From IMG/VR virus record IMGVR_UViG_3300033153_013547, positions 186,001 through 250,000 of that record: a DNA stretch of 64,000 bases; one strand, 5' to 3'. Below, piece after piece: positions 15,838 to 61,177 of the stretch (the stretch's first letter is position 1; every line of letters begins with the position of its first letter). The translations under genes and the position numbers were made by a program. The notes under the pieces were generated by a model that was given only the letters and a program-made list of their open reading frames with translations, was not told the DNA's origin and made no database searches.

Positions 15838-16428
15838 ATGTGGGGTGAAGATGTAAATTTGACTGATAATTATATCTATGGCATTGATCCATCTATACAC
15901 AACACTGGTTTCTGTATAAGCTTGCTGGACAAGTCATCTATAATTTTTGCTACTAACATTGTGGGTACTCATGATAATTACTATGACAATGCTATCAAGA
16001 TCACCAATGTTATTGGTGATTATGTAAAAAAATATCCTCCTAAATATGCTATCATTGAGTCAGTATATTCTGGTTTCAATGCCCAAACAACAATAAAATT
16101 ATCTATGTTAAGAGGTATGCTATGTTATGTGCTAAATAGCCGTGCTAAATGCAATGTTTACACTGGATATCTCTCTACTGCCAAACATTTACTAGGCATA
16201 AAAAAAGAAACAGATTTACTATTTCCTCACATGTGGTCAGGTCCAAGGATCAAAAAATTCAATAATAAACCATCTATAAAAGACACAAAAATAGCATCTC
16301 ATAATTATATCTTTCACAATAAAGTGTGGGATAAACCAATAGATGACAACATATCTGATGCAATCATTCTTGCTCATACTTTTCAGAAATATCCCAATGG
16401 ATTTTCCAGTATAAAGGATTTTGTATAG
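15838..16428 (+). CDS. ruvC: RuvC-like Holliday junction resolvase
   Basis: RuvC catalytic motifs YGIDPSIHNTG, AIIES and DDNISDAIILA. True start is probably ATG 15838 or TTG 15859 rather than 15607. Confidence 0.8.
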   Translation: MWGEDVNLTDNYIYGIDPSIHNTGFCISLLDKSSIIFATNIVGTHDNYYDNAIKITNVIGDYVKKYPPKYAIIESVYSGFNAQTTIKLSMLRGMLCYVLNSRAKCNVYTGYLSTAKHLLGIKKETDLLFPHMWSGPRIKKFNNKPSIKDTKIASHNYIFHNKVWDKPIDDNISDAIILAHTFQKYPNGFSSIKDFV

Positions 16429-23000: not shown

Positions 23001-24705
23001 TACCAGCATATTCTGTCTGTGAAGGAGAGGCATAAGTGCCAATATGTTGATGAATAGGTGCAACATAAGCATGAACACCCAGCCCCACAATCTTCCCACT
23101 TGGCTCACCATTAGCAGTAGAAACATCAAAGAAATGAATATGTGAATTGGCATGTTGCAAACTTACATCAGCAATAGCATCATAAGCAGTAAAAAGTGCT
23201 CCTGCTGTGTTTGGAACAGAGAAGTCATGATGAATGTCTCCCTCTGTAATATGAATTGCATCTGTATTAGCTCTTGCTGGGCCAATAAGACCAGAAGGCA
23301 TTACAATCCTAATACCCTCAAGGCTTTCTGGAACATTAGACGCATCTACTCCACTCAAATTAACGGCTATTCCTCTAATTCTTGTGTCTGCTCCAGTGGG
23401 GTCTAAAGCATCACCCAAAATACGAAGACAAGTAAGATGAGCCTCAGCATCCAGTGCAACTTGGTTCTGTATGTCTATAATTTGATTACCTGTTCCAGTA
23501 GCAATAGATGGCTTTACTTCAAGTGCTCCTGTGAGTGGATCATTTGAACAATCTAACTTTAGAAAAGTAGCATCTACTTCTGCTTCTGTGTAATATCTAT
23601 TATCTAACTGCCCAGCATCAAGTTCTACTTGAGTATAAAATCTTGCTTCTGGGTCTTGCCAGGCAGGAATGCCTGCTGCTATACCAAGATAATCACCTGC
23701 ACTGCCTATACCAAGTCTTGTGGGTGTGCCTGTGTTGTTAGAGGAATAAATAATGTCTCCAGTGGTTGTAAGGGGGTTGGTTATTGCTGCTACCCATGCT
23801 GTATTGTTGCCATAATACATGGTGTGGGTATCTTCTGCATAAATTACTTTGCTCTCATCATCTGCTGTCCATGTTGGTAAAGTTTCTGCACGTTCTATTT
23901 CACAATATCCATTGAAATAACTTACTGGTAGCTCAAATCTTGAAAGGGTATTCCCCTCCACATATATTTCTATAGTTGGATCAACAACTGAAGAACCCTC
24001 AAGATCATCAACTATAATGGCATGTAGTTTTACAACAATTCTATCTGTCTGGCTGATCAAATGATCCCTGAGTTTGATCTCAAGATTGAATTCTTCTTGG
24101 GGTATGTATTCAGATGGTATAGTGTCAGACGTTTCTCTCTGTAATTCTGGAGATAATTGACTAATTGCCAATAGGGTTTCTACCCCAGTTTCACTCCTGG
24201 AGTAAATATCATAATATAGTCTTATGCCTCTATATTGAGCACTTATTCTCAATGCATGAATATGCATGTGAGCTATTCCATCACCAATTACTTCAACTCC
24301 AGGAACACCTACGTCTGTGATCCATTGACCTATAATATTGTCTTCATATGTAAGCACAAAACGTAGAGCTGTTACATTGTTGGGTGATCTTGTCTCCAAC
24401 ATTTCCATGTAATCAGTTACATCAGAAGTGGATTCATCTGAATATAAATAATAATATATGGAATTAGGGTTGTGTCCTAATGGTTCCCATCCAAAATAAT
24501 CTCCTGAATAATTTACTCCTTCATTTCTTTCATATATCAAGGAACCCTGTCTTCTTTCTGTCCAGTGGGGTAAAGATAACAATCTACGGATAAGTGATCC
24601 ATTTTGTGTAAGAGTATTGACTGTATTCCTAACCAACGTTTGTTGCTTGTTGATTAGTTCTCTTTTCAGGGATTCTTGTGATTGAGCCATGAACACTACA
24701 TCCAA
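20011..24705 (-). CDS. tail fibre / receptor-binding protein with pectin-lyase-like beta-helix (likely start ATG 24690)
   Basis: Fibre motifs LTTTGDIIY...RLGIG, RYYTEAEVD and RIGIGTAAP; beta-helix entry IDAAITAATAGDTLVLAAGTYTI; internal repeat. Confidence 0.8.
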   Translation of the reverse strand: MDVVFMAQSQESLKRELINKQQTLVRNTVNTLTQNGSLIRRLLSLPHWTERRQGSLIYERNEGVNYSGDYFGWEPLGHNPNSIYYYLYSDESTSDVTDYMEMLETRSPNNVTALRFVLTYEDNIIGQWITDVGVPGVEVIGDGIAHMHIHALRISAQYRGIRLYYDIYSRSETGVETLLAISQLSPELQRETSDTIPSEYIPQEEFNLEIKLRDHLISQTDRIVVKLHAIIVDDLEGSSVVDPTIEIYVEGNTLSRFELPVSYFNGYCEIERAETLPTWTADDESKVIYAEDTHTMYYGNNTAWVAAITNPLTTTGDIIYSSNNTGTPTRLGIGSAGDYLGIAAGIPAWQDPEARFYTQVELDAGQLDNRYYTEAEVDATFLKLDCSNDPLTGALEVKPSIATGTGNQIIDIQNQVALDAEAHLTCLRILGDALDPTGADTRIRGIAVNLSGVDASNVPESLEGIRIVMPSGLIGPARANTDAIHITEGDIHHDFSVPNTAGALFTAYDAIADVSLQHANSHIHFFDVSTANGEPSGKIVGLGVHAYVAPIHQHIGTYASPSQTEYAGRKINSGVNWADGIDGIECFVKKNDEVYIGSTSQFSEIEVVMGTPGTKPVTPTFWYNTAADTWTQFYPEDATDGFQKSGLIHWPLEDISALWTNNGDPGGAETSAGYWIKIIRTANPDPGAPIPTTMKIGVVTLYEWDKNGDVDIHSLQTSGNILIGGSNNELRFYEGANYVGFEAPALGADQIWVLPAVDGNLNDLLITNGAGVLSWGPIPAHLHDGDVLEHDGVNSDGGNFDFKTTGSFNLKASGDNTNYLSFTTTTIPDICHIAAVSADLEITATGGDISFDDENLITTGKTTTKNLEITGSNITYLDITDDIDAAITAATAGDTLVLAAGTYTITDNIDITKSISIVGQGKGITTITCVTDSKSIFDIIVSHVCIRDLTIDVTAAGCYSIRADGSGGNNLTDIFIQNVEINMNSHTGIQRGIYFLCASGEIWDTTINITSTDNSCYGIYYYTTASSEAATTLRCYNVQTTLSIGGGSGRGFYCYDNGSSNDAFLYLYNCSTLVTESAAASSYGSNASGDNAYIYADNCVFNATDDDVKSSSSGTVELHDCVLINNSTSGTITYTGTNVTDQLQVATNVLIKDQGECRFYEGTNYVGFEAPALGADQIWVLPNADGGAGDVLQTNGGGVLSWGAGGGADEKVKIDAAATAGYIGAASNDGVLRTLTPLTYTDGGDFVTIDLDETAIDHNVLNNLAVGDVHTQYVLRQPTADTVINNAAGDFNWRMASTGDANLFFLDAGLDRIGIGTAAPVTLLTVEGVLSTREQNLGLPDIIANYGQWINDSNDNRFKGVDPNGKVHQLGIENGEVFQGQDLAEDAEGGLRWYSDMTAHGGETAAATVTAAPVYGFTFGANYGCTDAHGIWSWMARRDDVPTYEQSEVSIGVPIKAWANGGDATIRARIKVNDVSYLDKFYLWWNDVSNANAITTRGRTDVLGNMANDTWYEASWNITLPTVATNGGLRIGVWAVGNDIPAPGPTMELINVYVEWIGIRIWAG
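21097..22521 (-). repeat. intragenic direct repeat (~48 aa; copies 21097-21240 and 22377-22521)
   Basis: RFYEGxNYVGFEAPALGADQIWVLP..DG...D.L.TNG.GVLSWG occurs twice; identical 25 nt ggagcctcaaatcctacataattag at 21194 and 22475. Confidence 0.9.
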
Positions 24706-29357: not shown

Positions 29358-30440
29358 TTACTTCCCAGATTTAGCTCTATTACATGCCTTACATAACATT
29401 TGACAATTTTCAGGAATTGTCTTTCCACCCTTATGCCATGGGGTTATGTGATCTGCTTGCATTTCATCTATCTCAAAATGCTTTTCACATTTTACACAAA
29501 TGCCCTTCTGCCTTTCATATGCTTCCCTCTTCTGTCCTTCTGTAAATGCTCTAATATTTAGGTATTTTTCTTCTCTTGTCAAAACATATGAAAAAATACC
29601 AGACTTCTTGGTCACATCCTCATCTTGCATCAATTCAAATATTTCCTTATCCAACTTAACGGGGTCTATTTGTTTGTCTTTGAATTTATTGTATAAAAGT
29701 CCAAGTGGAACTTTCTTTATTTCCCTACGATAGGTAAGAAAAGTAGTTCTTGTCCAATTTATAACACGTTGGAAATATGTCCATAGATCAAGGGCGTCTG
29801 AATTATGCTGATTACGAGCCATATAATCTTCAATATTTTTATCACTGATCCACTCAATTGCAGTTTCTAAATAATCTTGACGAATTGGAGAACCAGGCAC
29901 ATAATCATGAGCCAAATCATAAGCAGGACAACCAGTCTTACTGAAATATCTTTTTGCATCAGTCAACCAAGGACCAGTGTAAATAGCATTACGAAGTTCT
30001 TGATCTGTCAACTTCTCACCAGCTATATTGATGGTTTTAAACCAGTCTAACTTTTCCTTGTCATTTCCTTCACAAAAATAAATCATCAACTTATAGTCAA
30101 GAATCTGCTCTTTCTCTGTGTCCTCAAGATTGTGAAAATACTGATAATCCAGTGAGAAATTGCCTGCTACATATTCACAAATGCTTATGGTTCTTTGCTG
30201 TCCATCCATAACTTCATAGGAACCATCTGTGTTCTTGACCCAATACATTACATTTAGGGGAAAATCCTTTCTTACTGTTTCAATTACAGCTGCCCTTTGC
30301 TTGTCTTTGTAAATAAATTCTCGTTGATATTTTGGACGAATGTTGAGCTTTCCACCATAACCAATAACACCTTCTTCGTTGTTATTGATGTATTCATTTA
30401 CTACTTCTCTGATAGTAATTTCTTTAAGTTCTATTTTCAT
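29358..30440 (-). CDS. DUF262 (ParB/GmrS-like) plus HNH endonuclease
   Basis: RPKYQREFIY, VMDGQQRT and FKTIN...ELRNA (DUF262); CVKC...ADHITPWHKGG...CKACN (HNH). Confidence 0.9.
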   Translation of the reverse strand: MKIELKEITIREVVNEYINNNEEGVIGYGGKLNIRPKYQREFIYKDKQRAAVIETVRKDFPLNVMYWVKNTDGSYEVMDGQQRTISICEYVAGNFSLDYQYFHNLEDTEKEQILDYKLMIYFCEGNDKEKLDWFKTINIAGEKLTDQELRNAIYTGPWLTDAKRYFSKTGCPAYDLAHDYVPGSPIRQDYLETAIEWISDKNIEDYMARNQHNSDALDLWTYFQRVINWTRTTFLTYRREIKKVPLGLLYNKFKDKQIDPVKLDKEIFELMQDEDVTKKSGIFSYVLTREEKYLNIRAFTEGQKREAYERQKGICVKCEKHFEIDEMQADHITPWHKGGKTIPENCQMLCKACNRAKSGK

Positions 30441-48581: not shown

Positions 48582-49595
48582 CTAAAACCCCAACAGTTCC
48601 TTGACTTCCTTCAGACTAAATTCATCAGGATCCATACCATATGGGGTGTCAATAATAGTGGTTACACCCCTATATCCTACACTATTCATCATAGTCAAAA
48701 ACCTTGTTGCCATATCATCTCCGCCTTCATCTCCATCTCTAAAGCACAAGATATGATCAAATGAAGATAAGAGCTGAGCTTGTATAAAACTTATTGACTT
48801 ACCCATGGAAGCTACTGCCTGAATTCCATATTCAAACATTTTCATAACCTTGAACTCACCTTCCACAAGCACAATATATGATGAATCATCTATGTTGCTG
48901 TAATTGAATAATATTCTTGACTTACTGACACCAGAGGGAACTGTCACATATTTACTGTGTGCTTTACCTGATATATCTCTCAACTTAAACATAACAGGAT
49001 CACCCACACAATTAAATACAGGAATAACAACCCTATCACGAAAGATGCCATAAGGCTTGCCCATAGCTATCTGAAAAAACTTGAGAGTATATGGATTGAA
49101 ATCTCTATATGTATTGATAGACATACAATGCTCTCTATATGCCACTCTTAGATCATGCACTATCTGAGGATTTGCTGTAAATTCTTCTCCATCTCCAAAA
49201 CCAACTAAAGGATGTTGTTGAGAATGATATTTATTAGGAATCTTTCTACCCAAAAGTCCTTCAAGTTTTTTCTTTGCAGCAGCAATGTCACAATGTTCTA
49301 CAAGTGATATGAGCTGGGCAATACTACCCCCTGCTTGACATTTTGTGTGACATATGTACACAAGCTTCTGGTAATTTACATTGAGAGCTTGTGGATTGGT
49401 TCCTCCATGGATTGGGCAAGAGGAGTAAATTTCATGCCTTGCTGGATTGACTCTTACATTTATAGCTCCATATCCACTGAGTAACTCTACAATAACATCA
49501 CAGCTTGATCTACTCTCATTACTGGATGTTTTGTTGCTCATATTTTGCTCATCACTACATCTCAAAACAGGATGTGGCTTGTTTCCCTGACTCAA
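48582..49595 (-). CDS. dnaG: DNA primase (CHC2 zinc finger plus Toprim)
   Basis: CPIH...CHTKC, RVVIPV, SKY, LVEGE, DGDEGG, DPDE. Confidence 0.9.
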   Translation of the reverse strand: MSQGNKPHPVLRCSDEQNMSNKTSSNESRSSCDVIVELLSGYGAINVRVNPARHEIYSSCPIHGGTNPQALNVNYQKLVYICHTKCQAGGSIAQLISLVEHCDIAAAKKKLEGLLGRKIPNKYHSQQHPLVGFGDGEEFTANPQIVHDLRVAYREHCMSINTYRDFNPYTLKFFQIAMGKPYGIFRDRVVIPVFNCVGDPVMFKLRDISGKAHSKYVTVPSGVSKSRILFNYSNIDDSSYIVLVEGEFKVMKMFEYGIQAVASMGKSISFIQAQLLSSFDHILCFRDGDEGGDDMATRFLTMMNSVGYRGVTTIIDTPYGMDPDEFSLKEVKELLGF

Positions 49596-50562
49596 TAGCA
49601 GAATAAATTGTTTTATATTTTTCTATACACTTATTATAGCCAAAATTGTTAATCACATGATCAAAGATTTTGCTATAATTCATAGCAGTTGTCATACATT
49701 TCTTATACGACAATCCTGCTTGCTCAATCAATGATAGAATATTAGCATCAGGATTCTTCCGATTCTTACGCATGATAGCATCAGCTATGTACATAGAAGA
49801 TATTTCTGTTACAGCATCACCCAATGTACGCATTTCACTGGTACTTATATTGGGTGGATTGAAGTCACTATTGTACAGTAACTCCCAACTATTAGGAATT
49901 ACTGGTGCAACTTTACCAGTACTATAGTTGGGTATCAAAACAGGCACCTTAGAAGCCAAACATGCTAAAACTTTGATACCTGATGTTATAACACAAGCAC
50001 TTTTCTTTGCTACAAGATTGATTAGTGGCACAATAGGTGCTATCTTTAGTATTTCTGGAGGCATCTTCTCTTTGATCACAAGTTGATTCATCTCATCAAC
50101 TCTATCAAAAGGTACCATCAATATCATTGACATATTCATGCTCAGAAAAAATCTGACTGTTGATAGAGCAAGCCTACAGGCAGCAAGAGGGTTTTGGTGT
50201 TCTATCATTACTACCGTGCCACAATAGGACCTTTTTTCTGTTATAACACAAGGAGGAGCTCTAGGTATTCCATACTTTCTGGATAAAACCAGTGAGTGAC
50301 ATATTGTATTTTCAGGATGTAAATTCAGTGCTTGCTTGCATTCTTTGTCTGAATACACACTCCAAAGTACTTTATGATCCTTGAGAATATCTTTATCAAA
50401 AAGATATCCATGATAGTGCAAAACACCTGATCCATGCTCTGAAAAATTGTCTAAATGAACCAATTCTGACATATTGCCATTAGTCAATTGCAGAGCATGG
50501 AATACTGAATCCTCAGTTGAATAGACATCCTGTTTATTCAATACTTGTAAAACTTTACTCAT
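49555..50562 (-). CDS. divergent GT-B glycosyltransferase-like protein
   Basis: SACVITSGIKVLACLASKVPVLI resembles the GT-B C-terminal motif, with the usual Glu missing. Confidence 0.4.
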   Translation of the reverse strand: MSKVLQVLNKQDVYSTEDSVFHALQLTNGNMSELVHLDNFSEHGSGVLHYHGYLFDKDILKDHKVLWSVYSDKECKQALNLHPENTICHSLVLSRKYGIPRAPPCVITEKRSYCGTVVMIEHQNPLAACRLALSTVRFFLSMNMSMILMVPFDRVDEMNQLVIKEKMPPEILKIAPIVPLINLVAKKSACVITSGIKVLACLASKVPVLIPNYSTGKVAPVIPNSWELLYNSDFNPPNISTSEMRTLGDAVTEISSMYIADAIMRKNRKNPDANILSLIEQAGLSYKKCMTTAMNYSKIFDHVINNFGYNKCIEKYKTIYSAIESGKQATSCFEM

Positions 50563-51007
50563 CGACCTGCAAGCCTAAGTCCTTATCAAGTTGTGCCATT
50601 GATCTCTTATATGCTGCTTCTGTATATGAAGATGACCACCCATAGCGTGCTCCAAATCTCATCAGAAAACTGGCAGCTCTTTTCATGGCAGTAATCCTCT
50701 GAGTTGGTGCCATAGTTACATCAACCTGCATGGCATCAATGATTACCATAGCCACATGCAATGGATCATCTTTGCCAAAGATCTCTTCGTCCCTTTCTCT
50801 TATACGTTGTTCTATTTCTGCTAACTGCTTGTAAGTGATCTGATCACCTGGCTTGATGTGTGGCTTGATATGTGGAGGAATAAGTTCCTCTGGAACCATA
50901 TCATTTTCACTAGGCTTGGCATCTACTTCCTCAGCAGGCTGTTCCCTTTTGTCCTCTACCACAACTTCTTCAATTACTGCCTCTTCAATCAATTTTTCAT
51001 CACTCAT
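50555..51007 (-). CDS. hypothetical protein
   Basis: GGAGG RBS. Confidence 0.6.
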   Translation of the reverse strand: MSDEKLIEEAVIEEVVVEDKREQPAEEVDAKPSENDMVPEELIPPHIKPHIKPGDQITYKQLAEIEQRIRERDEEIFGKDDPLHVAMVIIDAMQVDVTMAPTQRITAMKRAASFLMRFGARYGWSSSYTEAAYKRSMAQLDKDLGLQVDE

Positions 51008-51048
51008 ACGTTCAAATACCTCCGTCTATTTATCAAACAATATCATAG

Positions 51049-51300
51049 TTAATGTTGCAATGTAGCAATAACACTCACTATATGATCGAATTTTACATAA
51101 TAATATCGATCAATAACCGTAGGTTTGGTGACATCAAACATCGATCCACAGATATCTCTTCTGTCTTTCATTTGATGAACCAATTCTTCTACTTCATGAG
51201 AAGATATGTTCTCTAAATCTATTACATGTAACTCCCCATGAATTTCCACTTTTATTTCAACATCATAGAAATCATCATCTCTAAAATTCAGTTCTTTCAT
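51049..51300 (-). CDS. hypothetical protein
   Basis: ATGA coupling to the DnaE-C stop. Confidence 0.6.
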   Translation of the reverse strand: MKELNFRDDDFYDVEIKVEIHGELHVIDLENISSHEVEELVHQMKDRRDICGSMFDVTKPTVIDRYYYVKFDHIVSVIATLQH

Positions 51301-52391
51301 GATGGTTCTTTTACCTCCAACTGTTCCAACTCAAACACTTTCTTAATTACTATTGTGCCTCTATTACTTACCTTTCCCTCAATACACACAGGATTATTAT
51401 TAACCAGTAATCCCAGTGAGGCAATATCTTTCTCATCATCTTCATCATAAAAATATATGCATGGTAGATGAGTTATCCCGTCAGAAATTTCAAACACAAG
51501 GTAAGGGGTTCCTTTTCTGCTAATAAATGATCTTCTTGAAGAAACAAGACCAACATACTGCCCCTGAACCTTGCCTATTTGTCTTGATTCCGTAGGATTA
51601 TGAGCTCCTGCAGGTATATTATAAGCATCTAAAATGCCACCAGAAATATACACTCCCAAGATCTCAAACTCCATGGAACTTAATTCAGCCTTACTAAACT
51701 CCCCTATGATTACAAGTTCATCTATATCTAGATCAAGAGGTAATGGCTCACGTGATTCTGCCTTTTTATTCTTTAGCCTTGCTTTATTCTTAGCATTCCA
51801 TTCATGTATTTTTCTATAAGCATATAAGAGAGCTTTACGTGTCAGCACAACATCACTATTATCTAACAGAGGTATACCATCAAACGCACCTATTTTGATT
51901 AGATTAATCATTCCATCTTTACGTGCTGTGCCCCTAACTACAATATCCTGCACAGATTTATATGGTCCATTGTCTTCTCTGTTTTTTACAATGACACTGG
52001 CTGAATTTAGCCCCACCTTCCTTACAGAAGTCAGCCCAAACATAATATGTCTAACTTTGTCATCGTCTTCATATGGTGTAAACATAGTACCAGAAATGTT
52101 GATCCTTGGTGGTGAGAGCTTTATTTTCAATTGTTTACACTCCTTCATGAAATCCCTAAGAGTATTCTCAAGATCATCTCCACTTTTAGACTCAATAGCA
52201 TCAATCATAGATGCAGCAATAAAAATATGTGGCCAGTATGTTTTTACATAGGCAGTATGATAGGTCAAGATAGCATAAGATACTGAATGACTGTTCTGAC
52301 TAACCAAAAATTGTTTAGCCCTTTCATCTGTTACTAGATAATTGTGAGGAGGACCATCAAGTGAAAGACTTATAAAGGCTTTTTTATTCAT
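51297..52391 (-). CDS. dnaE: DNA polymerase III alpha, C-terminal piece with N-terminal split intein half (IntC)
   Basis: IntC ...PHNYLV...FLVSQN followed by extein SHSVSYAILTYHTAYVKTYWP; PPRINIS; HhH FGLTSVRKVG; LIKIGAFD; EFEILGVYISG; OB fold. Alternative TTG start at 52418. Confidence 0.92.
   Translation of the reverse strand: MNKKAFISLSLDGPPHNYLVTDERAKQFLVSQNSHSVSYAILTYHTAYVKTYWPHIFIAASMIDAIESKSGDDLENTLRDFMKECKQLKIKLSPPRINISGTMFTPYEDDDKVRHIMFGLTSVRKVGLNSASVIVKNREDNGPYKSVQDIVVRGTARKDGMINLIKIGAFDGIPLLDNSDVVLTRKALLYAYRKIHEWNAKNKARLKNKKAESREPLPLDLDIDELVIIGEFSKAELSSMEFEILGVYISGGILDAYNIPAGAHNPTESRQIGKVQGQYVGLVSSRRSFISRKGTPYLVFEISDGITHLPCIYFYDEDDEKDIASLGLLVNNNPVCIEGKVSNRGTIVIKKVFELEQLEVKEPS
52293..52391 (-). 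mobile_element. split intein C-half (IntC, ~33 aa)
   Basis: Block F-like FISLSLDGPPHNYLV and block G LVSQN/S. Confidence 0.85.
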
Positions 52392-52875
52392 ACCTTGTTC
52401 CCATCCATCTACAGACAATTAATCCAGAATTGATCTTTTCATAATTCACACAAATATCCAAAAACTGATCAACAGTAGCAATAGCACTATCAGTTCCTGC
52501 TGTTTTTAGTGCTCTTGCAAATATTTGCCTATTTTTATCCTGATCTATTACACCACGAATATTCTCCATTACATTCCACTTTTGAGCCATTTGTCTAATA
52601 CAAGTCCAGTGAGTCATCAATATAGGATCCTTGTTGATATTACGTCCATATCCACGAATTGTGGGTAGTTCAGAGGCACCAGCCTGCTTAAATACTTTTG
52701 ACATACTACGTATTATGCTTGATCCCTTACAATAAAAATAATCAGTTCCTGGTAACTCATCACGTTTAACTACAATAGCTGTTGTTGATCTCATCCTTGT
52801 ATCTTTAGGTAATTTGATCAAATAGTAATTATTACCACATATACTAACTTTGCCAATTATATTGTTATCCATCAA
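52384..52875 (-). CDS. hypothetical protein between the two split-intein halves
   Basis: AAAGGA RBS; overlaps the IntN stop and the IntC start; no recognisable endonuclease motif. Confidence 0.7.
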   Translation of the reverse strand: MMDNNIIGKVSICGNNYYLIKLPKDTRMRSTTAIVVKRDELPGTDYFYCKGSSIIRSMSKVFKQAGASELPTIRGYGRNINKDPILMTHWTCIRQMAQKWNVMENIRGVIDQDKNRQIFARALKTAGTDSAIATVDQFLDICVNYEKINSGLIVCRWMGTRYE

Positions 52876-54541
52876 TTAATAGTCCTTTATTATCTATTAC
52901 AACTAGACAATTACACTCATTTGGCATTTTATACCCATCTTCATTGAGGAAGTAATGATCTCTTGTGCATTCTATTTCAACATTTTCATTGCCTACTTTA
53001 ACTATTGGTTCATCAAAAGCAAAAGTTACTGCTCTCACAGTATTAGTTATTATTCCACCATTGCCCACATAAGAATAAATAGTATCTCCAAAGTTCAACT
53101 GATCTATTCTTACAAGACCACTTGGTGTCAAAACCAAAGTATCTTCACTCAGACACTTATTGAAACCATAATTTCCAAAACCTTCTATCTGTTCCCATAG
53201 TTTGGTAGCTTCTTCTAACGTCCAGCCTGAATGACGGACACAACCATCAATAAATTTTGGCTTAGCCTGAGCAAGCTTAGAGGACAACTTTTTACCAACA
53301 ATTCTTCTTAGGTTATCCCCCTCATTAGGACTAAACCCAGCAATTTTCTGAGCTATTTCTATAATACTTTCTTGGTATATGATAAGACTAGAAGTTTTTT
53401 CCAATATAGGTTTCAGATCATCATGCAAATATTCTGGCTTTGTCCTTCCATGCCTAAGAGAAAGGTATTTTTCTTCAAATCCTGCTGACATAGGTCCAGG
53501 TCTGTGTAGAGCTATAACATCTGAAATATCTTCTATGCTAGTAGGCATACATTTCTGCATAGTTTTCCTGATCCCCACAGATTTCATTTGAAATAACCCA
53601 GCATACAAGCCTTTTTGCATAAATTCAAAAACCTTAGGATCATTCATGGGAATATCATCAATAGTCATACTATTTTCAATGTATCCCATGCTATGAGCCA
53701 TATTCAAAGTGTTTTGTATAACTGACAATGTGCCAAGACCTAAAAAATCTATTTTACATAAGCCTGCTAACCCTGCAGACTTCATATCTAGTTGCACAAC
53801 ATTGTTACCACTAGCATCTACATACATAGGCACAATTGACTGCAATGGCTCATTAGATATTATGATCCCAGCAGCATGCAATCCAGTCTGTCTATAATTT
53901 TGCCTGAGGGAATTAAATATAGCAATAAATTCATCTATGTCCTCAAGACAATTTTCACCCAAAGTCTGCTTGCTTACCTCAACAATTTTAGCAACATACT
54001 GCCTTAGTTCTTCATGAATAAATATTTCATCAGTCCCTATCCAGTCTCCAGTGCTCATATCTACATTAGTAGCAGGCAAATACATTTTAGATATCAAGCC
54101 AACAGATGCTTCTTCACTGCTTCCACATATACATCTAACTATGTCTCTAAAAGCAGACTTAGGTTTGTATTCTGCATAAGTGCCTATGCTGGCAAAATAT
54201 TTGTTACCATATTTACTTCTGACAGCATCTTTCACTCTGTCTCTACCATACTTGTCAAAATCTATGTCAAAATCTGGTTGCTCTCTTTTGACAACAAGAC
54301 CAAACTCTCCATCAGGTTTTTTGCTTGTGATCCCAAGAGCATATGCTAACAATGAATTAGTCTTGTTCTTGTTGCCTGCTCCACAATCACAAGCCTTATT
54401 GATCATATAAATCATATGATCATCAACATGATAGAATTCATATAAATCAAGTTCGTTAGAGATCCTGTCCATCTCTTCTTTACTAAACTTTTTCTCCCAT
54501 CGTTCAGTCTGCTGGTGACAAAAATCCCTTAGTTGGCTCAT
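52865..54541 (-). CDS. dnaE: DNA polymerase III alpha, catalytic middle piece with C-terminal split intein half (IntN)
   Basis: PDFDIDF, GLHAAGIII, KIDFLGL, GLFQM, LHRPGPM, IYQE, LRRIVGKK, YGFNK then CLSEDT intein. Confidence 0.93.
   Translation of the reverse strand: MSQLRDFCHQQTERWEKKFSKEEMDRISNELDLYEFYHVDDHMIYMINKACDCGAGNKNKTNSLLAYALGITSKKPDGEFGLVVKREQPDFDIDFDKYGRDRVKDAVRSKYGNKYFASIGTYAEYKPKSAFRDIVRCICGSSEEASVGLISKMYLPATNVDMSTGDWIGTDEIFIHEELRQYVAKIVEVSKQTLGENCLEDIDEFIAIFNSLRQNYRQTGLHAAGIIISNEPLQSIVPMYVDASGNNVVQLDMKSAGLAGLCKIDFLGLGTLSVIQNTLNMAHSMGYIENSMTIDDIPMNDPKVFEFMQKGLYAGLFQMKSVGIRKTMQKCMPTSIEDISDVIALHRPGPMSAGFEEKYLSLRHGRTKPEYLHDDLKPILEKTSSLIIYQESIIEIAQKIAGFSPNEGDNLRRIVGKKLSSKLAQAKPKFIDGCVRHSGWTLEEATKLWEQIEGFGNYGFNKCLSEDTLVLTPSGLVRIDQLNFGDTIYSYVGNGGIITNTVRAVTFAFDEPIVKVGNENVEIECTRDHYFLNEDGYKMPNECNCLVVIDNKGLLIDG
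52868..53155 (-). mobile_element. split intein N-half (IntN, 96 aa)
   Basis: Block A CLSEDTLVLTPSG and block B IECTRDHYF; the ORF stops with no C-terminal blocks. Confidence 0.9.
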
Positions 54542-54599
54542 ATCCTCTCCACTATATTTCTTTTGTCTCAGTAGCTTCTTTGTCTAATGGTTCTCTCAT

Positions 54600-54917
54600 T
54601 CAGTCTGCTTCTTTGTCAAACAACTGGGGCATCATGGATTCTAACATATCTGTTACATCATCTAACCTTTCCTTTAGTATATCAATCTTTTCTTCCAGTG
54701 CTTCAAGCTTCTGACTCATGTCTTCTGTATAGATCACATGGGTTGGAGCAGGAGGATAACCACCATCAGGATAAGGTAAGGGAGTACCAATAAATGAGTC
54801 AGGAATTAGTGGATCCTGCTTCCATGTATAATCAGTTGTTCCACTATCTGTGATTTCTATCCAATTGTGATCATTGGTGCGGTAAATTCCATGCATACTA
54901 TTATCATCACTAAACAT
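54600..54917 (-). CDS. hypothetical protein with coiled-coil C-terminus (paralogue of 55539-55910)
   Basis: KLEALEEKIDILKERLDDVTDMLESMMPQLFDKEAD. Confidence 0.65.
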   Translation of the reverse strand: MFSDDNSMHGIYRTNDHNWIEITDSGTTDYTWKQDPLIPDSFIGTPLPYPDGGYPPAPTHVIYTEDMSQKLEALEEKIDILKERLDDVTDMLESMMPQLFDKEAD

Positions 54918-54925
54918 TTACACTC

Positions 54926-55564
54926 TCACTTCCTTTGGTAATTGTGCGCCAATAATTGTATATCATCACTATGACGCAAACCTACTTTCTCTAACCTCTC
55001 TGCCTCGCGTTTTATTACATACAAACACAATGACGGCTTAGCAAGTAACATTCGCTTTGTTGCAGTAAAGGCATAATCATTACAATAACCATAATAACCA
55101 CCCTTACACAAATTATCTAATTTGTGGGCATAACGTTTGCCTGCAGAGGTAAGATCTAGTCTATAGGTGAATTTTTCATTCCACTCTAACATTTGAAAGG
55201 GAAATTCTGCCACATAATGACTTTCTATGTATGCCCTATATGGATCAAGTAAATAAGCATGTCGACCTGCATTTATTCTGGTAGTCTTGATCATCCCAAA
55301 TGCCACTAAATAATTTATTGCTTCAAATAGTTGCTTACTACATGCACCATACTTTGTCATAATAAAATCATTTTTCAGATTTATTTTATTATGCCTATGT
55401 CCTAGTATACCTATACCAGGATGCATGTAAAGACACAGATAAGTCATGTCATCAAGACCCAGCACAGGTTTACTATTGTTATAAAACAGTATTCTAACAA
55501 CATAATCACGTATACCAAGGTCTAGAGGTTGCCATGTATTACCATTCATGAGCACTATCCTCAT
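54926..55564 (-). CDS. winged-helix protein, YwgA/Panacea(SocA)-like
   Basis: YGACSKQLFEAINYLVAFGMI...LDLTSAGK pattern. Confidence 0.4.
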   Translation of the reverse strand: MRIVLMNGNTWQPLDLGIRDYVVRILFYNNSKPVLGLDDMTYLCLYMHPGIGILGHRHNKINLKNDFIMTKYGACSKQLFEAINYLVAFGMIKTTRINAGRHAYLLDPYRAYIESHYVAEFPFQMLEWNEKFTYRLDLTSAGKRYAHKLDNLCKGGYYGYCNDYAFTATKRMLLAKPSLCLYVIKREAERLEKVGLRHSDDIQLLAHNYQRK

Positions 55565-55910
55565 CTAACGATTTTCTCATCCAATCTGCTTCCTTATCAG
55601 ACAATTTTGGCATCGCAGATTCTAGCATATCTATTATGTCTTCTAACTTATCTTTTAGTATGCCAATATCTTCTTGCAATTTATCAATCTTTTCTGCCAT
55701 GGATAGAGGCATAGCATATGATAACATGTTGGACATCATTGCCTGTGTATCTATTGCAACATCATTGTTGGGATCATTAAGAACACGTAAATCATCAATA
55801 TGATAATCACCCTGCACTCTATTTACGTCTGCTACCAATCTTGCTCTTGCTGGCTCTGACAACGATGACCAATCAAAAGATTGCAGAATTTCACCATCGT
55901 AATATACCAC
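55539..55910 (-). CDS. hypothetical protein with coiled-coil C-terminus (paralogue of 54600-54917)
   Basis: KIDKLQEDIGILKDKLEDIIDMLESAMPKLSDKEADW. Confidence 0.65.
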   Translation of the reverse strand: MVYYDGEILQSFDWSSLSEPARARLVADVNRVQGDYHIDDLRVLNDPNNDVAIDTQAMMSNMLSYAMPLSMAEKIDKLQEDIGILKDKLEDIIDMLESAMPKLSDKEADWMRKSLDEDSAHEW

Positions 55911-57142
55911 TATTCTTCACCTATTCCAAAATCATCATAGCACACAGTAGATCTACCATAATTCAAAAACCTGCTAAACATCAGCCCATACTTTATTGGA
56001 TCAACACTAGTTATACCAAGTGAGTATGCTGCAATTGATCCTGCTCCAGAACCTCTGCCTGCACCCACACCAACATTCAGCGTCCTTGCAGTATCTACTA
56101 TATCAGACACTAAAAGAAAATAATCTACATAGCCCATCTTGTCAATAATGAACAATTCATGATCTAATCTATCAGTAATTTCTTTAGACAAATTCTGGCT
56201 ATAGAGTTGTCTGGCTCCATCATAGCATTTGTCTCTAAGAATTTTTGTCTTATATGCATATGAAAGTGTCTTGTCTCTGATCCTAAATTCAGGCATATAT
56301 GATTTGCCAAGAGCAAGTTTAAACTCTACCTTATCTACTATTTCCATTGTATTCTGACAAAGAGGGATTGCATCTATGCCCACACTATTATATCTTTCTA
56401 TAATTTCATCATATGAATGAAGATAATAAGAATGAGTGCCTGAGAATGGTTTAATACCTATTTTGTTAGATGAAGAAAACCTTACTGCCTGCAAGAAGCC
56501 ATGAGCCTTCCAGTCAGAAGCATTTAGATAATGGGCATCTGTGGCACAAATAGTTTTGATGCCCATCTCATTCAGAAATACTTCTGCCACAACCTTTTCT
56601 TCTGGAATATCATGTGCATGAACTTCAAGATAAAAATCTTCCTTGAAGGCTTCTACAAACCTATCAAGCAGGGTTTTATACACATCCATATGTCCTGATG
56701 TAATAAGCCTTTGCAGACTTCCAGATATACAACTTGCTGTTGCTATGAGACCTTCAGAATTCTGCAAAACGCTGTCCATGGGAAAAATCGTTCGGCTGAT
56801 ATTGTCTCTACCCACTCTCGTTTTAGAAGCACCCAAAAGCTTGAGAAGATTATGCCAGCCTGCTTCGGTCTTTGCTATCAGAACCAGATGTGACTTAGGA
56901 TATTCTATGCCAAAATCAGAGTTGATATACTTTACATAAGCTTCTATTGCTATAATAGGTTTAATACCATAATTCTCACATTCAATAGTTTGCTCAACAC
57001 AAGCACCCAATGAGCCATGATCACTTATGGAGACTGCTTTTTGTCCTAGTTCTATAGATCTTTTAATAATATCTTTGGGTCTTCCAAGGGCATCAAGAAC
57101 AGAATAAGAACTATGAATATGAAGATCACAGAATTCACTCAC
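55910..57142 (-). CDS. dnaE: DNA polymerase III alpha, N-terminal piece (PHP domain plus GS-motif segment)
   Basis: LHIHSSYSVLD, SDHG, HLVLIAK, SCISG, TDAHY, GRGSGAGS, DPIKYGLMFSRFLN; ends before the PDxDxDF motif. Confidence 0.93.
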   Translation of the reverse strand: MSEFCDLHIHSSYSVLDALGRPKDIIKRSIELGQKAVSISDHGSLGACVEQTIECENYGIKPIIAIEAYVKYINSDFGIEYPKSHLVLIAKTEAGWHNLLKLLGASKTRVGRDNISRTIFPMDSVLQNSEGLIATASCISGSLQRLITSGHMDVYKTLLDRFVEAFKEDFYLEVHAHDIPEEKVVAEVFLNEMGIKTICATDAHYLNASDWKAHGFLQAVRFSSSNKIGIKPFSGTHSYYLHSYDEIIERYNSVGIDAIPLCQNTMEIVDKVEFKLALGKSYMPEFRIRDKTLSYAYKTKILRDKCYDGARQLYSQNLSKEITDRLDHELFIIDKMGYVDYFLLVSDIVDTARTLNVGVGAGRGSGAGSIAAYSLGITSVDPIKYGLMFSRFLNYGRSTVCYDDFGIGEE

Positions 57143-57384
57143 TATCTATCTCCCTTCAGGCTTTTCTCATTTTTATGCAATTGCATTTGTATTTTCTTGA
57201 TACAATCTCGTAGAGAGTCTATAGAAAGCATGGCAAGTGCTATTTCATGTGTCTCCTCATCCAATATATGCTTATTTGATATAAATTCTAACACATTAGC
57301 CTCAAGCCATTCTAAATTAAGAAGACAGACATCTCCTTTATCTACTACAGACTGAGCACTTTCTGGTGCTTTTATTACATTCAT
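57142..57384 (-). CDS. hypothetical protein
   Basis: Coupled ORF with GGAG RBS. Confidence 0.55.
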   Translation of the reverse strand: MNVIKAPESAQSVVDKGDVCLLNLEWLEANVLEFISNKHILDEETHEIALAMLSIDSLRDCIKKIQMQLHKNEKSLKGDR

Positions 57385-58082
57385 TATGCATCTCCTGCAA
57401 CATCAAGACCACCAAATGTTTTCATGTCTGGCAGACTAATAGAAGGTTTTATGTCTTGATTACCTTGACTTGAGAATTGTTTATGCTCTTCTCTGCTACT
57501 AAATAAATCTAGATAGGTAGCATGGGCTATCATTATGGCTGCTGCAATAACTCCACCAACATCCTCCCTACCAAGAATTTTAGATCCCAACATAACACCT
57601 GTTAAGATCTCTTGTCTGTTATCATTTATTCCAAGCCGTTGATCCCTAGTAAATACTGGTAGCAAATGGAAGAGCATCTTAGACACAAAATCTACCCACA
57701 TATCAGTTACATCATAATATTTGTGCTTGCAAGACCCCAATATGAAATTGATAAATATTGCCGTCGTTACTACAGATTCTATGAGCAATGGATGCTCAAG
57801 ATCACCTAAATCAACGTCACTCAAAACTAATTGCATATCCAATGTTTCATTTAATTTACCACCATCAAAATCAAGCCTACGCAATTCGTTTGTTCCTGCT
57901 GATATGAATTCTTTACTGATACTATCTGCGGATTTGGTTATCATTTTGACAGCTTCTGCAGGAGTTAGTGTAACGACCTCAGCACCAGATTTCTCCTCTA
58001 GCTCAGATTCAATCTCACTCAAATCTTTTGCGTTTTTCATCCTAGACAATTTTCCACCCATAAGATCATTCAAAATTGACAT
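57384..58082 (-). CDS. hypothetical protein
   Basis: 232-aa coupled ORF. Confidence 0.6.
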   Translation of the reverse strand: MSILNDLMGGKLSRMKNAKDLSEIESELEEKSGAEVVTLTPAEAVKMITKSADSISKEFISAGTNELRRLDFDGGKLNETLDMQLVLSDVDLGDLEHPLLIESVVTTAIFINFILGSCKHKYYDVTDMWVDFVSKMLFHLLPVFTRDQRLGINDNRQEILTGVMLGSKILGREDVGGVIAAAIMIAHATYLDLFSSREEHKQFSSQGNQDIKPSISLPDMKTFGGLDVAGDA

Positions 58083-58519
58083 TATTTGTCTCCCTCAACA
58101 TCTATTGGAACTAGATCTACGGTAATACTCTTGACAGTATCATACTGTAGATTATTTATTATGTTTCTGCCTTCTATCAATTTGGCAGAAACCACAAAAC
58201 ACATGTTGTTAGACTCAATCTCCAACGATACATCATATAGTTTCTTACCATCTTCTACAATATAATCGTTGGCATCAACAACAATTACAGCATATATTGC
58301 TTGATCACAACAGAGCACTGGGTATATGCTGTTTCTAGTTATTCCTAATTCATGTAATATTTGATGATAAGCCTGTCCTAGCTGTATAAATGCTTCTGCA
58401 TTACCATGATCCATATCTGGATGAACTTCTTTAGCAAGCTTTTTATATGCTCTATCAAGAGACTGCTTGGACAATTTCTCCATCTTTTGCTTCAACAGAG
58501 CGTGATAATTCTGCTTCAT
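58082..58519 (-). CDS. DnaJ J-domain protein
   Basis: AYKKLAKEVHPDMDHGNAEAFIQLGQAYHQIL (HPD motif). Confidence 0.85.
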   Translation of the reverse strand: MKQNYHALLKQKMEKLSKQSLDRAYKKLAKEVHPDMDHGNAEAFIQLGQAYHQILHELGITRNSIYPVLCCDQAIYAVIVVDANDYIVEDGKKLYDVSLEIESNNMCFVVSAKLIEGRNIINNLQYDTVKSITVDLVPIDVEGDK

Positions 58520-59174
58520 GTTCTAATACCAACTCAATTACTGTAGAAAGTGCATCTACCATACGAGATCTAACCTGTATAGCTTTATTAGTATTTTGGC
58601 TCAACATTCTATGGTAAAAAGCTGGATGATACATGGGCACAAACTTACAACTAACTCCATTCCTAGTAACATCATATGTTCCACCACAACATTTACTAAT
58701 TGGGATATGAATATCAAACAACTTTAGCACTGCAGCTCCACATCCCAACACAACAGAAGGACGAACATGATTCCACATATGATCAAATACTGGAATACAA
58801 GCAGCATATTCATCATCAGAAGGTGTTCTGTTACGTTGTGTTCCTTCAAACACAAACTGGCATCTGGCCATATTAGTAAATAATCCTCTTCTTAGAGGTG
58901 TATCATCAGAATCTGTGTCCTTTTGCCAATTAGTCTGGGCTTCTTTCATTATACCTCTTAGAACCTTACCAGCTGCTCCTACAAATGGTCTGCCCTGTTT
59001 GATTTCGTCTCTGCCAGGATTCATGCCAATTATTACATAGCTAGGATCTGCTGCCCCTTCATCAAAAACAGGTCTTAGCCCATTGACTGGATCATTGTAA
59101 CGTATAGCTCCTGGGCATTTCTGACAATCAAAAAAATCTTTGTAAAACAACACATTGTTAGGTTTGTATATCAT
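58455..59174 (-). CDS. uracil-DNA glycosylase, family 4-like
   Basis: CQKC...PVFDEG...IGMNPG..E...GRPFVGAAGKVL, TNMARC, NRTP, YHPA. Confidence 0.88.
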   Translation of the reverse strand: MIYKPNNVLFYKDFFDCQKCPGAIRYNDPVNGLRPVFDEGAADPSYVIIGMNPGRDEIKQGRPFVGAAGKVLRGIMKEAQTNWQKDTDSDDTPLRRGLFTNMARCQFVFEGTQRNRTPSDDEYAACIPVFDHMWNHVRPSVVLGCGAAVLKLFDIHIPISKCCGGTYDVTRNGVSCKFVPMYHPAFYHRMLSQNTNKAIQVRSRMVDALSTVIELVLEHEAELSRSVEAKDGEIVQAVS

Positions 59175-59992: not shown

Positions 59993-61177
59993 CTATAATC
60001 CAGCAGCAAATCCTGTTTTCTCATGATCAACAGGATCACCACGTAATCCCACGCTCAGTTCAATAGCTCTTGTAATCACTTCATCTACTAAACCAAGTTC
60101 TTTCAACTTTATAGCTAGCCTACCCTCACCCTGTTCCTTAACTTCTGTTCCATCAAGAGATTTATAATTATACCATGAACCAGATCTTGTAATTAGTCCC
60201 TCTATCTTCCCTGCCTGGATTACTCCATGCAAATTGTCAAATCCTGGTTCATGAAAACCATAAAATTGACTCTTACTATCAGCTATATTGACTTGTTTCA
60301 CCCAAAATCTTGTGGCCACAGGTTCATTACCAAATGGAGAACCATATTTATTCTTCATTACACGAACATTGATTTCATAGGCATATGCCTCTTTGATCTT
60401 GTTCTTGTCAATATCATTAGCAGTTATACATGGCTTGGTATATTTATAGAGATCTATTCTCTGCTGAGCATAATATGGCAAAGCCCTTCCTCCACCACCA
60501 ATCTTAGTCTTAGCCCCAGGCATTGTAGCCATTGTTGCTCTATACTGATTGGTGATCAAAAGAGTGCATTCATTAGGTGAAAGTAACCTAGGAATCCTCC
60601 TAAAAAAAACAGAATTTAGCTTAGGTTTGGTGTCCCTGATTCGAGCATCTATATTCATCTGCCCATCACTCTTACCTCTGATTTTGTCAATAGTATCTGC
60701 TGTTTGCATAGTATCCATAGAATCTATGATCACTAACCCAAACAAACCAGTAGCTACTGCTTCATTTATGAAATTGTAGATCTCCTCAGCACTTTCAATG
60801 CTAGACATATTATCTACAACAAAGAGCTTATTACTCTTAGTATCACCCTCATAGTTGCCACCTAGTGCATTATACCATGAAGGATCTAAGGATTGTTCTA
60901 GATCAAAAAACAACACTGATCTATCATAATTCTTGATCATGCTTATAGCTGATACAATACACAAGGCTGTTTTGCCACTATGTTCATCACCCAGTATTTC
61001 AACTGTCTTACCAACACCCCATCCTCCATGCAACATATAATCCACTGCAGAAGAACCTGTGGCATAAAACTTCTTTTCCATAACCTTATCTGTTTTGAGA
61101 GGAATGTTGAACTTGGCTCTCAGATCATTGAGAATTTGGGAGGCAGGAGTGACTTTACTAACTTCTTTCTTACTCAT
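59993..61177 (-). CDS. recA: RecA/UvsX recombinase
   Basis: ATGS..VDYML.GG, GDEHSGKT, FFDLEQ, IIDS, TNQYR, GGRALPYYA, KNK, SGSWY, QGE. Confidence 0.92.
   Translation of the reverse strand: MSKKEVSKVTPASQILNDLRAKFNIPLKTDKVMEKKFYATGSSAVDYMLHGGWGVGKTVEILGDEHSGKTALCIVSAISMIKNYDRSVLFFDLEQSLDPSWYNALGGNYEGDTKSNKLFVVDNMSSIESAEEIYNFINEAVATGLFGLVIIDSMDTMQTADTIDKIRGKSDGQMNIDARIRDTKPKLNSVFFRRIPRLLSPNECTLLITNQYRATMATMPGAKTKIGGGGRALPYYAQQRIDLYKYTKPCITANDIDKNKIKEAYAYEINVRVMKNKYGSPFGNEPVATRFWVKQVNIADSKSQFYGFHEPGFDNLHGVIQAGKIEGLITRSGSWYNYKSLDGTEVKEQGEGRLAIKLKELGLVDEVITRAIELSVGLRGDPVDHEKTGFAAGL

Follow-up and report, generated by a model that had tools for sequence, protein, structure and literature searches.

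How can a replicative DNA polymerase work when its catalytic motifs are distributed over three separate genes? The question is raised by a 64,000-nucleotide (nt) stretch of DNA, hereafter the window, which covers positions 186,001 to 250,000 of the 261,124-bp IMG/VR viral contig IMGVR_UViG_3300033153_013547 (G+C content, ~36%). Here, a replication module on the minus strand carries the C-family polymerase DnaE, the DNA polymerase III (Pol III) alpha subunit, as three separate open reading frames (ORFs), which we refer to as pieces 1, 2 and 3 (Table 1). Pieces 1 and 2 are interrupted by three ORFs of 123, 212 and 105 amino acids (aa), and pieces 2 and 3 by a single ORF of 163 aa. We consider it likely that the three chains make up one functional polymerase, with pieces 2 and 3 spliced together, piece 1 remaining separate, and the active site being a composite formed in an obligate heteromer. 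At the heart of this reading is a duplication of one palm subdomain, the two copies of which have lost complementary catalytic motifs.

A canonical DnaE, P0373 (1118 aa), aligns within the window at the three pieces only, with its residues 3-383, 286-730 and 730-994 matching pieces 1, 2 and 3 in this order. The Pfam domains follow the same succession, namely, PHP and the start of DNA_pol3_alpha in piece 1, DNA_pol3_alpha and the finger domain in piece 2, and HHH_6 with a weak OB match in piece 3. An initial annotation of the window, made from the sequence alone, had described DnaE motifs on three ORFs separated by four unrelated genes, each piece with its own start signal and with the PHP ligands and catalytic aspartates intact, and all of this is borne out. 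The GTG start of piece 1 overlaps the upstream stop codon (TAGTG) and is preceded by AAGGGAG, GGAGAGG lies ahead of the ATG of piece 2, and piece 3 overlaps, at its start, the stop codon of the ORF before it; no piece carries a frameshift or an internal stop. Putative metal-ligand positions of the PHP domain are H8, H10, D17, H42, E67, H85, C138, H177, D202 and H204; at nine aligned positions, which we take to be metal ligands, the residue is identical to that of Thermus Pol III alpha. The Arg-Gly-Ser motif and the three catalytic aspartates of DnaE-type enzymes are likewise all present, but spread over two chains (Arg-Gly-Ser in piece 1; D90, D92 and D265 in piece 2), and the fingers (PF17657, E = 5e-45), the (HhH)2 element (HHH_6, PF14579, E = 1.5e-16) and, weakly, the OB region (E = 0.05) complete the set. 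What the locus lacks is a single-chain catalytic core with one palm N-subdomain: the core is divided among the ORFs, and the subdomain is present twice.

Indeed, in the P0373 alignment, pieces 1 and 2 overlap by ~98 canonical DnaE residues. Alignment to the bacterial enzymes, which the initial annotation had recommended, places piece 1 at residues 5-399 of Escherichia coli alpha and the beginning of piece 2 at residue ~300. Residues 302-400 of piece 1 and 4-103 of piece 2 are 30% identical to each other (E = 3e-7), and Pfam PF07733 matches with its positions 2-101 in piece 1 and 3-260 in piece 2. Both copies span E. coli alpha residues ~300-400, so that the palm N-subdomain, of ~100 residues, is doubled. 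Piece 2 had been described as carrying PDFDIDF through YGFNK, which would make the break a simple cut between FSRFLN and PDFDIDF. This picture has to be revised: piece 2 does not begin at PDFDIDF, its first ~88 residues being a diverged second copy of the end of piece 1, and the break lies between two palm copies with complementary motif loss. Copy 1 keeps Arg-Gly-Ser, and its Asp-x-Asp strand is degenerate, whereas copy 2 has lost Arg-Gly-Ser, keeps Asp-x-Asp and leads straight into PDFDIDF. In the tail of piece 1, the equivalent of E. coli D401 is retained and that of D403 is replaced by Gly.

The functional weight of these motifs can be read from the E. coli enzyme. In the cryo-EM structure of Pol III, Arg362-Gly363-Ser364 (on P-beta-1), Asp401 and Asp403 (on P-beta-2) and Arg390 lie within 4 Å of dGTP, the R362A variant of alpha is inactive, and R390A reduces the efficiency 27-fold (bioRxiv 10.64898/2026.06.29.735100). 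We take the roles of K553 and of the Asp residues from the same work. To see how the two copies behave across the family, we counted motifs in a cleaned alignment that brings together fused (n = 8), piece 1 (n = 6) and PHP-less (n = 36) sequences. Copy 1 is invariant at Arg-Gly-Ser and at the R390 equivalent (14/14 sequences). In the 44 sequences of copy 2, on the other hand, Arg never occupies the R362 position, nor Gly the G363 position; Asn stands at the S364 position in 44/44 and, three residues further on, at the G367 position, where Ser follows it, in 42/44, and the D401, D403 and D405 positions are Asp in 44/44. D90, D92, K263 and D265 of piece 2 all fall in invariant columns of the family alignment. 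As judged from these alignments, copy 2 has a conserved motif of its own, N-x-x-N-S, and is not decaying. Both pieces of the window carry the marks of the family: piece 2 matches a profile of the copy 2 head (E = 1e-33) and has N..NS ~35 residues ahead of PDxDxD, and piece 1 combines PHP and an intact Arg-Gly-Ser with a degenerate Asp strand and tail, followed by the stop. Similar tails are found in P0122 (FDEFGIGEE), a piece 1 from another sample that is 59% identical and ends alike, as well as in L002 (YDFGI) and L006, L007 and L010 (DFG[IF]). One subclade has piece 1 proteins with a conserved acidic C-terminus, ..DD[LQPA]GGVDRY, directly before the stop; the piece 1 of the window lacks this tail, which may be a docking peptide.

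The fused homologue P0281, which carries both copies in one chain and is 34% identical to piece 2 and 30% to piece 1, can stand in for the divided enzyme. Its AlphaFold2 model has a mean predicted local distance difference test score (pLDDT) of 92 and a predicted template modeling score (pTM) of 0.86, with both copies modeled confidently and a dip to 67 in the ~15-residue linker between them. The model matches E. coli alpha with a template modeling (TM) score of 0.85 and the Thermus ternary complex with a root-mean-square deviation of 3.6 Å. Since it superposes on both enzymes, the extra palm copy is predicted to fit within an otherwise canonical polymerase.

The second break, between pieces 2 and 3, is of a different kind and is probably a class-1 split intein, whose insertion point separates YGFNK from SHS. 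The N-intein begins with CLSEDT, and its best matches among Protein Data Bank (PDB) sequences are the N-fragments of the Npu DnaE split intein, aligned from residue 1 (E = 0.01-0.03, which is weak); split inteins in the PDB as a whole match with E values of 0.01-0.5, and the Pfam Hint_2 match in piece 2 (E = 0.018) is below the cut-off. Its block B, T526-R-D-H529, aligns to TKDH of the Npu DnaE N-intein. At the other end, the C-intein junction reads ..VSQN42/S43HSVSY, with Ser as the +1 residue, and the C-extein is colinear with P0373 residues 730-994. Once the intein segments are removed, the two extein ends meet exactly at P0373 residue 730, with neither gap nor overlap, as would be expected if pieces 2 and 3 are joined by trans-splicing. 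The ORF previously delimited as 51297-52391 for piece 3 stands, with the exception of its start, which is more likely the TTG at 52418 than the ATG at 52391, because only the TTG supplies an LSVDG segment like those of the C-inteins of L005 and L006. Locus L005, which contains pieces 2 and 3, has a homologous split intein at the same site (YGFNK/CLSED ... ISEN/SH; C-intein FHNY), and L006, which contains all three pieces, has one three residues downstream (FNSAH/CLGG ... LSRN/SC; C-intein QHNY); thus, the window is not the sole three-piece case. In all three split inteins the penultimate residue is other than His and the +1 residue is Ser. The L005 contig also carries genes for ribosomal protein S21 and translation initiation factor IF3.

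No intein features were found at the first break. A second intein there was considered and rejected: the tail of piece 1 extends only 10 residues past a Cys, relatives have Leu at that place or no residue at all, and fused homologues hold both tail and head in one chain.

The first break recurs widely. Piece 1 and piece 2 genes with like tail and head were found in at least 5 independent metagenomic assemblies, 0-6 genes apart. The genes between them vary, from none (in L007) to six (in L012, whose piece 2 is closest on the tree to that of the window; Table 1). The copy 2 head is present on IMG/VR contigs of 39-498 kb, and 5 of the 7 that were classified as split have a piece 1 ORF at a distance of 590-2936 nt upstream. 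A search of 1.84 billion representative sequences with the head profile returned 2397 matches at E<=1e-10; among the best 150 of these, considered together with three earlier family members and classified by motif rules, 75 are PHP-less with a pseudo-subdomain start, 10 are single-chain with tandem copies, 44 are canonical and 21 were left unclassified. An unrooted maximum-likelihood tree, built from the residues downstream of the Asp strand, has split forms scattered among fused ones, and well-supported branches force at least 5 state changes; piece 2 of the window pairs with P0003 (96 in the Shimodaira-Hasegawa-like approximate likelihood ratio test). The phage collection searched contains no close relative: megablast of positions 51000-57400 against 50,697 phage records gave no match, and all tblastn matches of piece 2 and P0091 among the phage records listed are at <=36% identity (all below 60%). 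Collectively, these comparisons indicate that the duplicated-palm pattern marks a large metagenomic and viral clade, of which the window is one member, and that the linker between the palm copies is a site of repeated gene cutting or joining, in either direction, which has also gathered unrelated genes.

Several relatives show further peculiarities. In L002, two inserts with LAGLIDADG ORFs break up piece 2 once more, behind RRAMGK (12862-15580; DnaE-coding segments, 14109-14252 and 15161-15559), for which Rfam reports no group I intron. A LAGLIDADG-type intein resides in piece 1 of L010/L011 (4238-6856) and another in RecA of L011 (12311-14719); in this group of phages, mobile elements have spread extensively into the replication genes. 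Among relatives of the canonical type, many PHP proteins of ~515 aa (P0140, P0217, P0142 and similar) stop right after ..STHAC, where longer relatives go on with GV..., which suggests a recurrent intron, recoding event or frameshift at that place. Finally, the metagenomic canonical relative P0295 has a uracil-DNA glycosylase (UDG)-superfamily domain fused N-terminally to PHP-DnaE, and both in the window and in L012 (3650-4282) the UDG-superfamily gene stands on its own, upstream of piece 1. The fusion in the former and the neighborhood in the latter two hint at a functional link.

How, then, might the three chains work together? The composite heteromer is the simplest reading because piece 2 is without the residues of the Gly-Ser (GS) motif, and piece 1 is without Asp403 and everything downstream of it. 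The split intein would join pieces 2 and 3 into a PHP-less chain with the Asp triad, thumb, fingers, HhH and OB, and piece 1, with its PHP exonuclease-type domain and palm N-subdomain, would remain a separate subunit, the first break being placed in the linker between the tandem subdomain copies. Copy 1 would supply the Arg-Gly-Ser that holds the incoming deoxynucleoside triphosphate along with the R390 and R396 equivalents, and piece 2 the metal-binding elements, while the pseudo-subdomain and the degenerate tail would let each half fold alone and dock. Formation of the heteromer, and which of the copies occupies the active site, we infer from this division of motifs. The proposal of one trans-splicing event and one noncovalent junction, already put forward in the initial annotation, is thus the best-supported reading, given the intein hallmarks with the exact extein junction and the recurrence of a first break that bears neither intein nor intron signals; the duplication and the clade-wide recurrence of that break had been missed. 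A tentative extension, which we hold to be rather doubtful, is a reciprocal domain swap, whereby the nucleotide-binding loop of the PHP subunit inserts by the Asp strand of the large subunit and the pseudo-copy pairs with the degenerate strand or tail, so that activity is strictly assembly-dependent. If true, such a module would explain the repeated switching between one chain and two chains in the clade. The pseudo-site of copy 2 may also bind a ligand of its own.

The complementary motif loss could be accommodated differently if the spliced chain of pieces 2 and 3 were self-sufficient by virtue of its N..NS loop, with piece 1 a detachable PHP proofreader that uses its palm segment as a docking handle. 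Proofreading in trans is normal in E. coli, and the N..NS motif of copy 2 is itself invariant. Moreover, residues 1-462 of piece 2 alone yield an AlphaFold2 model (pLDDT, 88; pTM, 0.71) with a canonical palm, thumb and fingers, the head being aligned to the palm N-subdomain, and the best Foldseek matches are to Pol III alpha (TM scores of 0.69-0.72 to Thermus alpha across the full query). Yet the pseudo-GS loop is the least confident part of this very model (pLDDT ~50), together with the segment before the Asp strand, and Arg362 is essential in E. coli alpha, whereas no copy 2 has Arg or Gly there. A mere docking handle would not need Arg-Gly-Ser and R390, which are nevertheless invariant in every copy 1 despite deep divergence. 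We regard a self-sufficient large chain as unlikely.

Two further explanations would do away with the heteromer altogether. The pieces might be a decaying dnaE or an assembly artifact, the phage relying on a host or another polymerase; the 64 kb that we examined are part of a 261-kb contig, another polymerase could lie elsewhere on it, and the inserted ORFs are ORFans. This is very improbable, however, given that the catalytic and PHP-ligand positions are all intact, that the reading frames are uninterrupted and that independent assemblies of other samples show the break again, with tail and head conserved. Alternatively, pieces 1 and 2 could be joined at the level of RNA or translation, by intron splicing, trans-splicing or ribosomal bypass. 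Introns are common in phage polymerase genes, and L002 has inserts with LAGLIDADG ORFs further downstream. However, within positions 50500-58000 Rfam detects no RNA family, introns included, at E<=1, and it likewise detects no intron in L002, the 1368-nt gap is filled by three tightly packed ORFs, and relatives have unrelated genes, such as the dCMP deaminase of L006, or as few as 14 nt with a separate stop and start between the pieces, which makes such joining barely credible.

The composite heteromer itself has to be held against several observations that weigh on the other side. The model of piece 2 alone is that of a complete canonical palm. At the second break, the similarity of the N-intein to solved inteins is weak (E ~0.02), the C-intein fragment has no match among PDB sequences, and the penultimate residue is Gln41 in the window and Glu or Arg in L005 and L006. 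A penultimate His is not universal in active inteins. Piece 2 has no close relative from which selection on it could be gauged (best identity, 35%), and the tree, although compatible with all duplicated forms making up a single clade (approximately unbiased test, p = 0.20), does not prove that they have one origin.

The two breaks have counterparts among known systems. Fractured genes, consisting of a split intein with a free-standing endonuclease, have been described in phage-like metagenomic loci, three of which lie in DnaE genes (Dassa et al. 2009, PMC2677866). As in those loci, the window has an N-extein with N-intein, an intervening ORF and a C-intein with C-extein on the same strand and in a DnaE host gene; the N-intein of 96 aa is within the range reported there (88-105 aa), Cys1, TxxH and the terminal Asn are shared, and the site differs from the cyanobacterial one. 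Unlike those loci, where the endonuclease ORF follows after a 27-51-nt spacer, the ORF of 163 aa (ORF163) matches no endonuclease family and overlaps both neighbors, and the window intein has Ser at +1 and Gln at the penultimate position. The cyanobacterial split DnaE inteins (Ssp/Npu) are also naturally split, and the Npu DnaE N-intein aligns with that of the window from Cys1 through TxxH, with marginal similarity. However, a cyanobacterial-type intein (P0037, CLSYDTEVLT) follows ...AEY, four residues upstream of the YGFNK site, and the cyanobacterial halves lie at separate loci, whereas those of the window are 0.5 kb apart and have Ser at +1.

For the first break, a logical parallel is the minimal Pol III catalytic module predicted in group 2.2 jumbo phages, composed of an NTP-binding protein and a Mg2+/template-binding protein (Iyer et al. 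2021, PMC7824862), which shares its split point with pieces 1 and 2. That module has no PHP or other DnaE domains, is encoded by distant genes and accompanies a family B polymerase; by contrast, the DnaE of the window is full-length, with PHP, fingers, HhH and OB, a distance of 1.4 kb lies between its genes, and the element of each half persists in the other as a degenerate copy. Essential replication enzymes encoded as two genes with inserted DNA between them and reassembled without splicing are also represented by the gp43 family B polymerase of some T4-like phages and by the Aeh1 NrdA split by mobE (cited in PMC2677866; PMC3045599). They belong to other enzyme families and, as far as those sources describe them, no duplicated catalytic subdomain with complementary motif loss is reported there. 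Our literature search, of incomplete coverage, found no described full-length DnaE clade with tandem palm duplication, complementary motif loss and frequent fission.

Table 1. Positions of the DnaE pieces, their motifs and neighboring genes in the window, and of related loci in other contigs (positions in the latter refer to the respective locus).
Feature	Position	Strand	Details
RecA	59993-61177	(-)	replication module of the window
UDG-superfamily gene	58455-59174	(-)	replication module, upstream of piece 1
dnaE piece 1, 410 aa	55910..57142	(-)	PHP, palm N-subdomain copy 1, short tail
PHP domain, residues 6-177	56612..57127	(-)	Pfam PF02811, E = 4.7e-37
Palm N-subdomain copy 1, residues ~296-400	55943..56257	(-)	Pfam PF07733 positions 2-101
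GRGSGAGS, intact	56036-56059	(-)	motif in copy 1
FSRFLNYGR	55952-55978	(-)	motif in copy 1, R390/R396 equivalents
Piece 1 tail YDDFGIGEE	55913..55939	(-)	degenerate remnant of the PDFDxDF strand
ORF123	55539..55910	(-)	C-terminal 39 aa paralogous to ORF105
ORF212, ORFan	54926..55564	(-)	self-match only among 5.8 billion proteins
ORF105	54600..54917	(-)	paralogous C-terminus
dnaE piece 2, 558 aa	52865..54541	(-)	pseudo palm N-subdomain (copy 2), catalytic palm, thumb, fingers, N-intein
Palm N-subdomain copy 2, residues 1-88	54278..54541	(-)	GNKNKTNS (54353-54376) in place of GRGSGAGS
PDFDIDF strand	54257..54277	(-)	catalytic D90 and D92; D/D/D invariant, 44/44
K263-I-D265	53747..53755	(-)	equivalents of E. 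coli K553 and D555 (third catalytic Asp)
Putative split-intein N-fragment, 96 aa	52868..53155	(-)	Cys1 (C463) directly after YGFNK; block B T526-R-D-H529
ORF163	52384..52875	(-)	between intein halves, overlaps both neighbors
dnaE piece 3, 373 aa	51297..52418	(-)	length from the more likely TTG start
Putative split-intein C-fragment	52293..52418	(-)	42 aa from TTG 52418 or 33 aa from ATG 52391; PHNY block, terminal Asn42, then Ser43
Piece 3 C-extein	51297..52292	(-)	SHSVSY fingers end, (HhH)2 (residues 98-182), OB-like region
DnaG-type primase	48582-49595	(-)	replication module of the window
L002	401-kb contig		two small ORFs between pieces 1 and 2
L006			one gene (dCMP deaminase) between pieces 1 and 2
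L007	477-kb contig		14 nt between pieces 1 and 2, separate stop and start
L010/L011			three ORFs between pieces 1 and 2; intein inside piece 1
L012			six ORFs between pieces 1 and 2; nearest piece 2 relative on the tree; RecA-UDG...primase synteny as in the window
L005 S21 and IF3 genes	13344-13565 and 15876-16403		on the contig with DnaE pieces
Acidic-tail piece 1 proteins	L006 6508-8490, L007 6592-7986, L010 4238-6856		also L015-L018, L022

The four intervening ORFs are without recognizable relatives. None has a significant match in Pfam, PHROGs or NCBIfam, none has a homologue in the related loci, and, for ORF163, no endonuclease family (GIY-YIG, Vsr-like or other) appears even among weak matches; it is unrelated to the ORF at the equivalent place in L005, which has an HExxH motif, and L006 is without an ORF there. 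The C-termini of ORF123 and ORF105, which flank ORF212, share 39 aa at 59% identity (E = 4e-11), with weak similarity at the DNA level and no further copy within the window, and a search for repeats gave no terminal ones by which the inserts could be recognized as a mobile element. The genes of the DnaE region abut or overlap their neighbors and, therefore, are likely co-transcribed. On the minus strand of positions 50500-58500, no terminator-like site was found, and promoter-like matches are fewer than expected from shuffled sequence. The suggestion that the split might serve post-translational control of replication gains no support from these data, nor was any sign of regulated assembly found; the genes are tightly packed on one strand without a terminator-like site.

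Beyond DnaE, a 145-aa ORF beside the replication genes (58082-58519, minus strand) has a J-domain-like HPD motif (..KKLAKEVHPDMDHGNAEAF..), which suggests a phage DnaJ-like co-chaperone. A 360-aa protein (29358-30440, minus strand) combines a GmrSD N-terminal (DUF262-type) domain with an HNH nuclease domain. The window also contains very large ORFs at 9799-12513 (plus strand, 904 aa), 12513-15656 (plus strand, 1047 aa) and 20011-24705 (minus strand, 1564 aa), none of which has a Pfam match, and a further one at 4292-9799 (plus strand, 1835 aa); these four may encode structural or injected proteins.

If the composite heteromer is correct, a high-speed replicative polymerase can work although one chain holds its nucleotide-binding loop and another its metal-binding strand. 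Tandem duplication of a subdomain, followed by complementary motif loss, would then have rendered the gene fissionable without a dead intermediate, which bears on how essential genes become split, a question that Dassa et al. (PMC2677866) posed with regard to split DnaE. The clade would also supply natural split inteins with Ser at +1 and heterodimerizing polymerase halves as potential tools. Finally, the clade is abundant in large marine and other environmental phage contigs and probably represents a major type of viral replicase, the members of which are now annotated as 'partial DnaE'.

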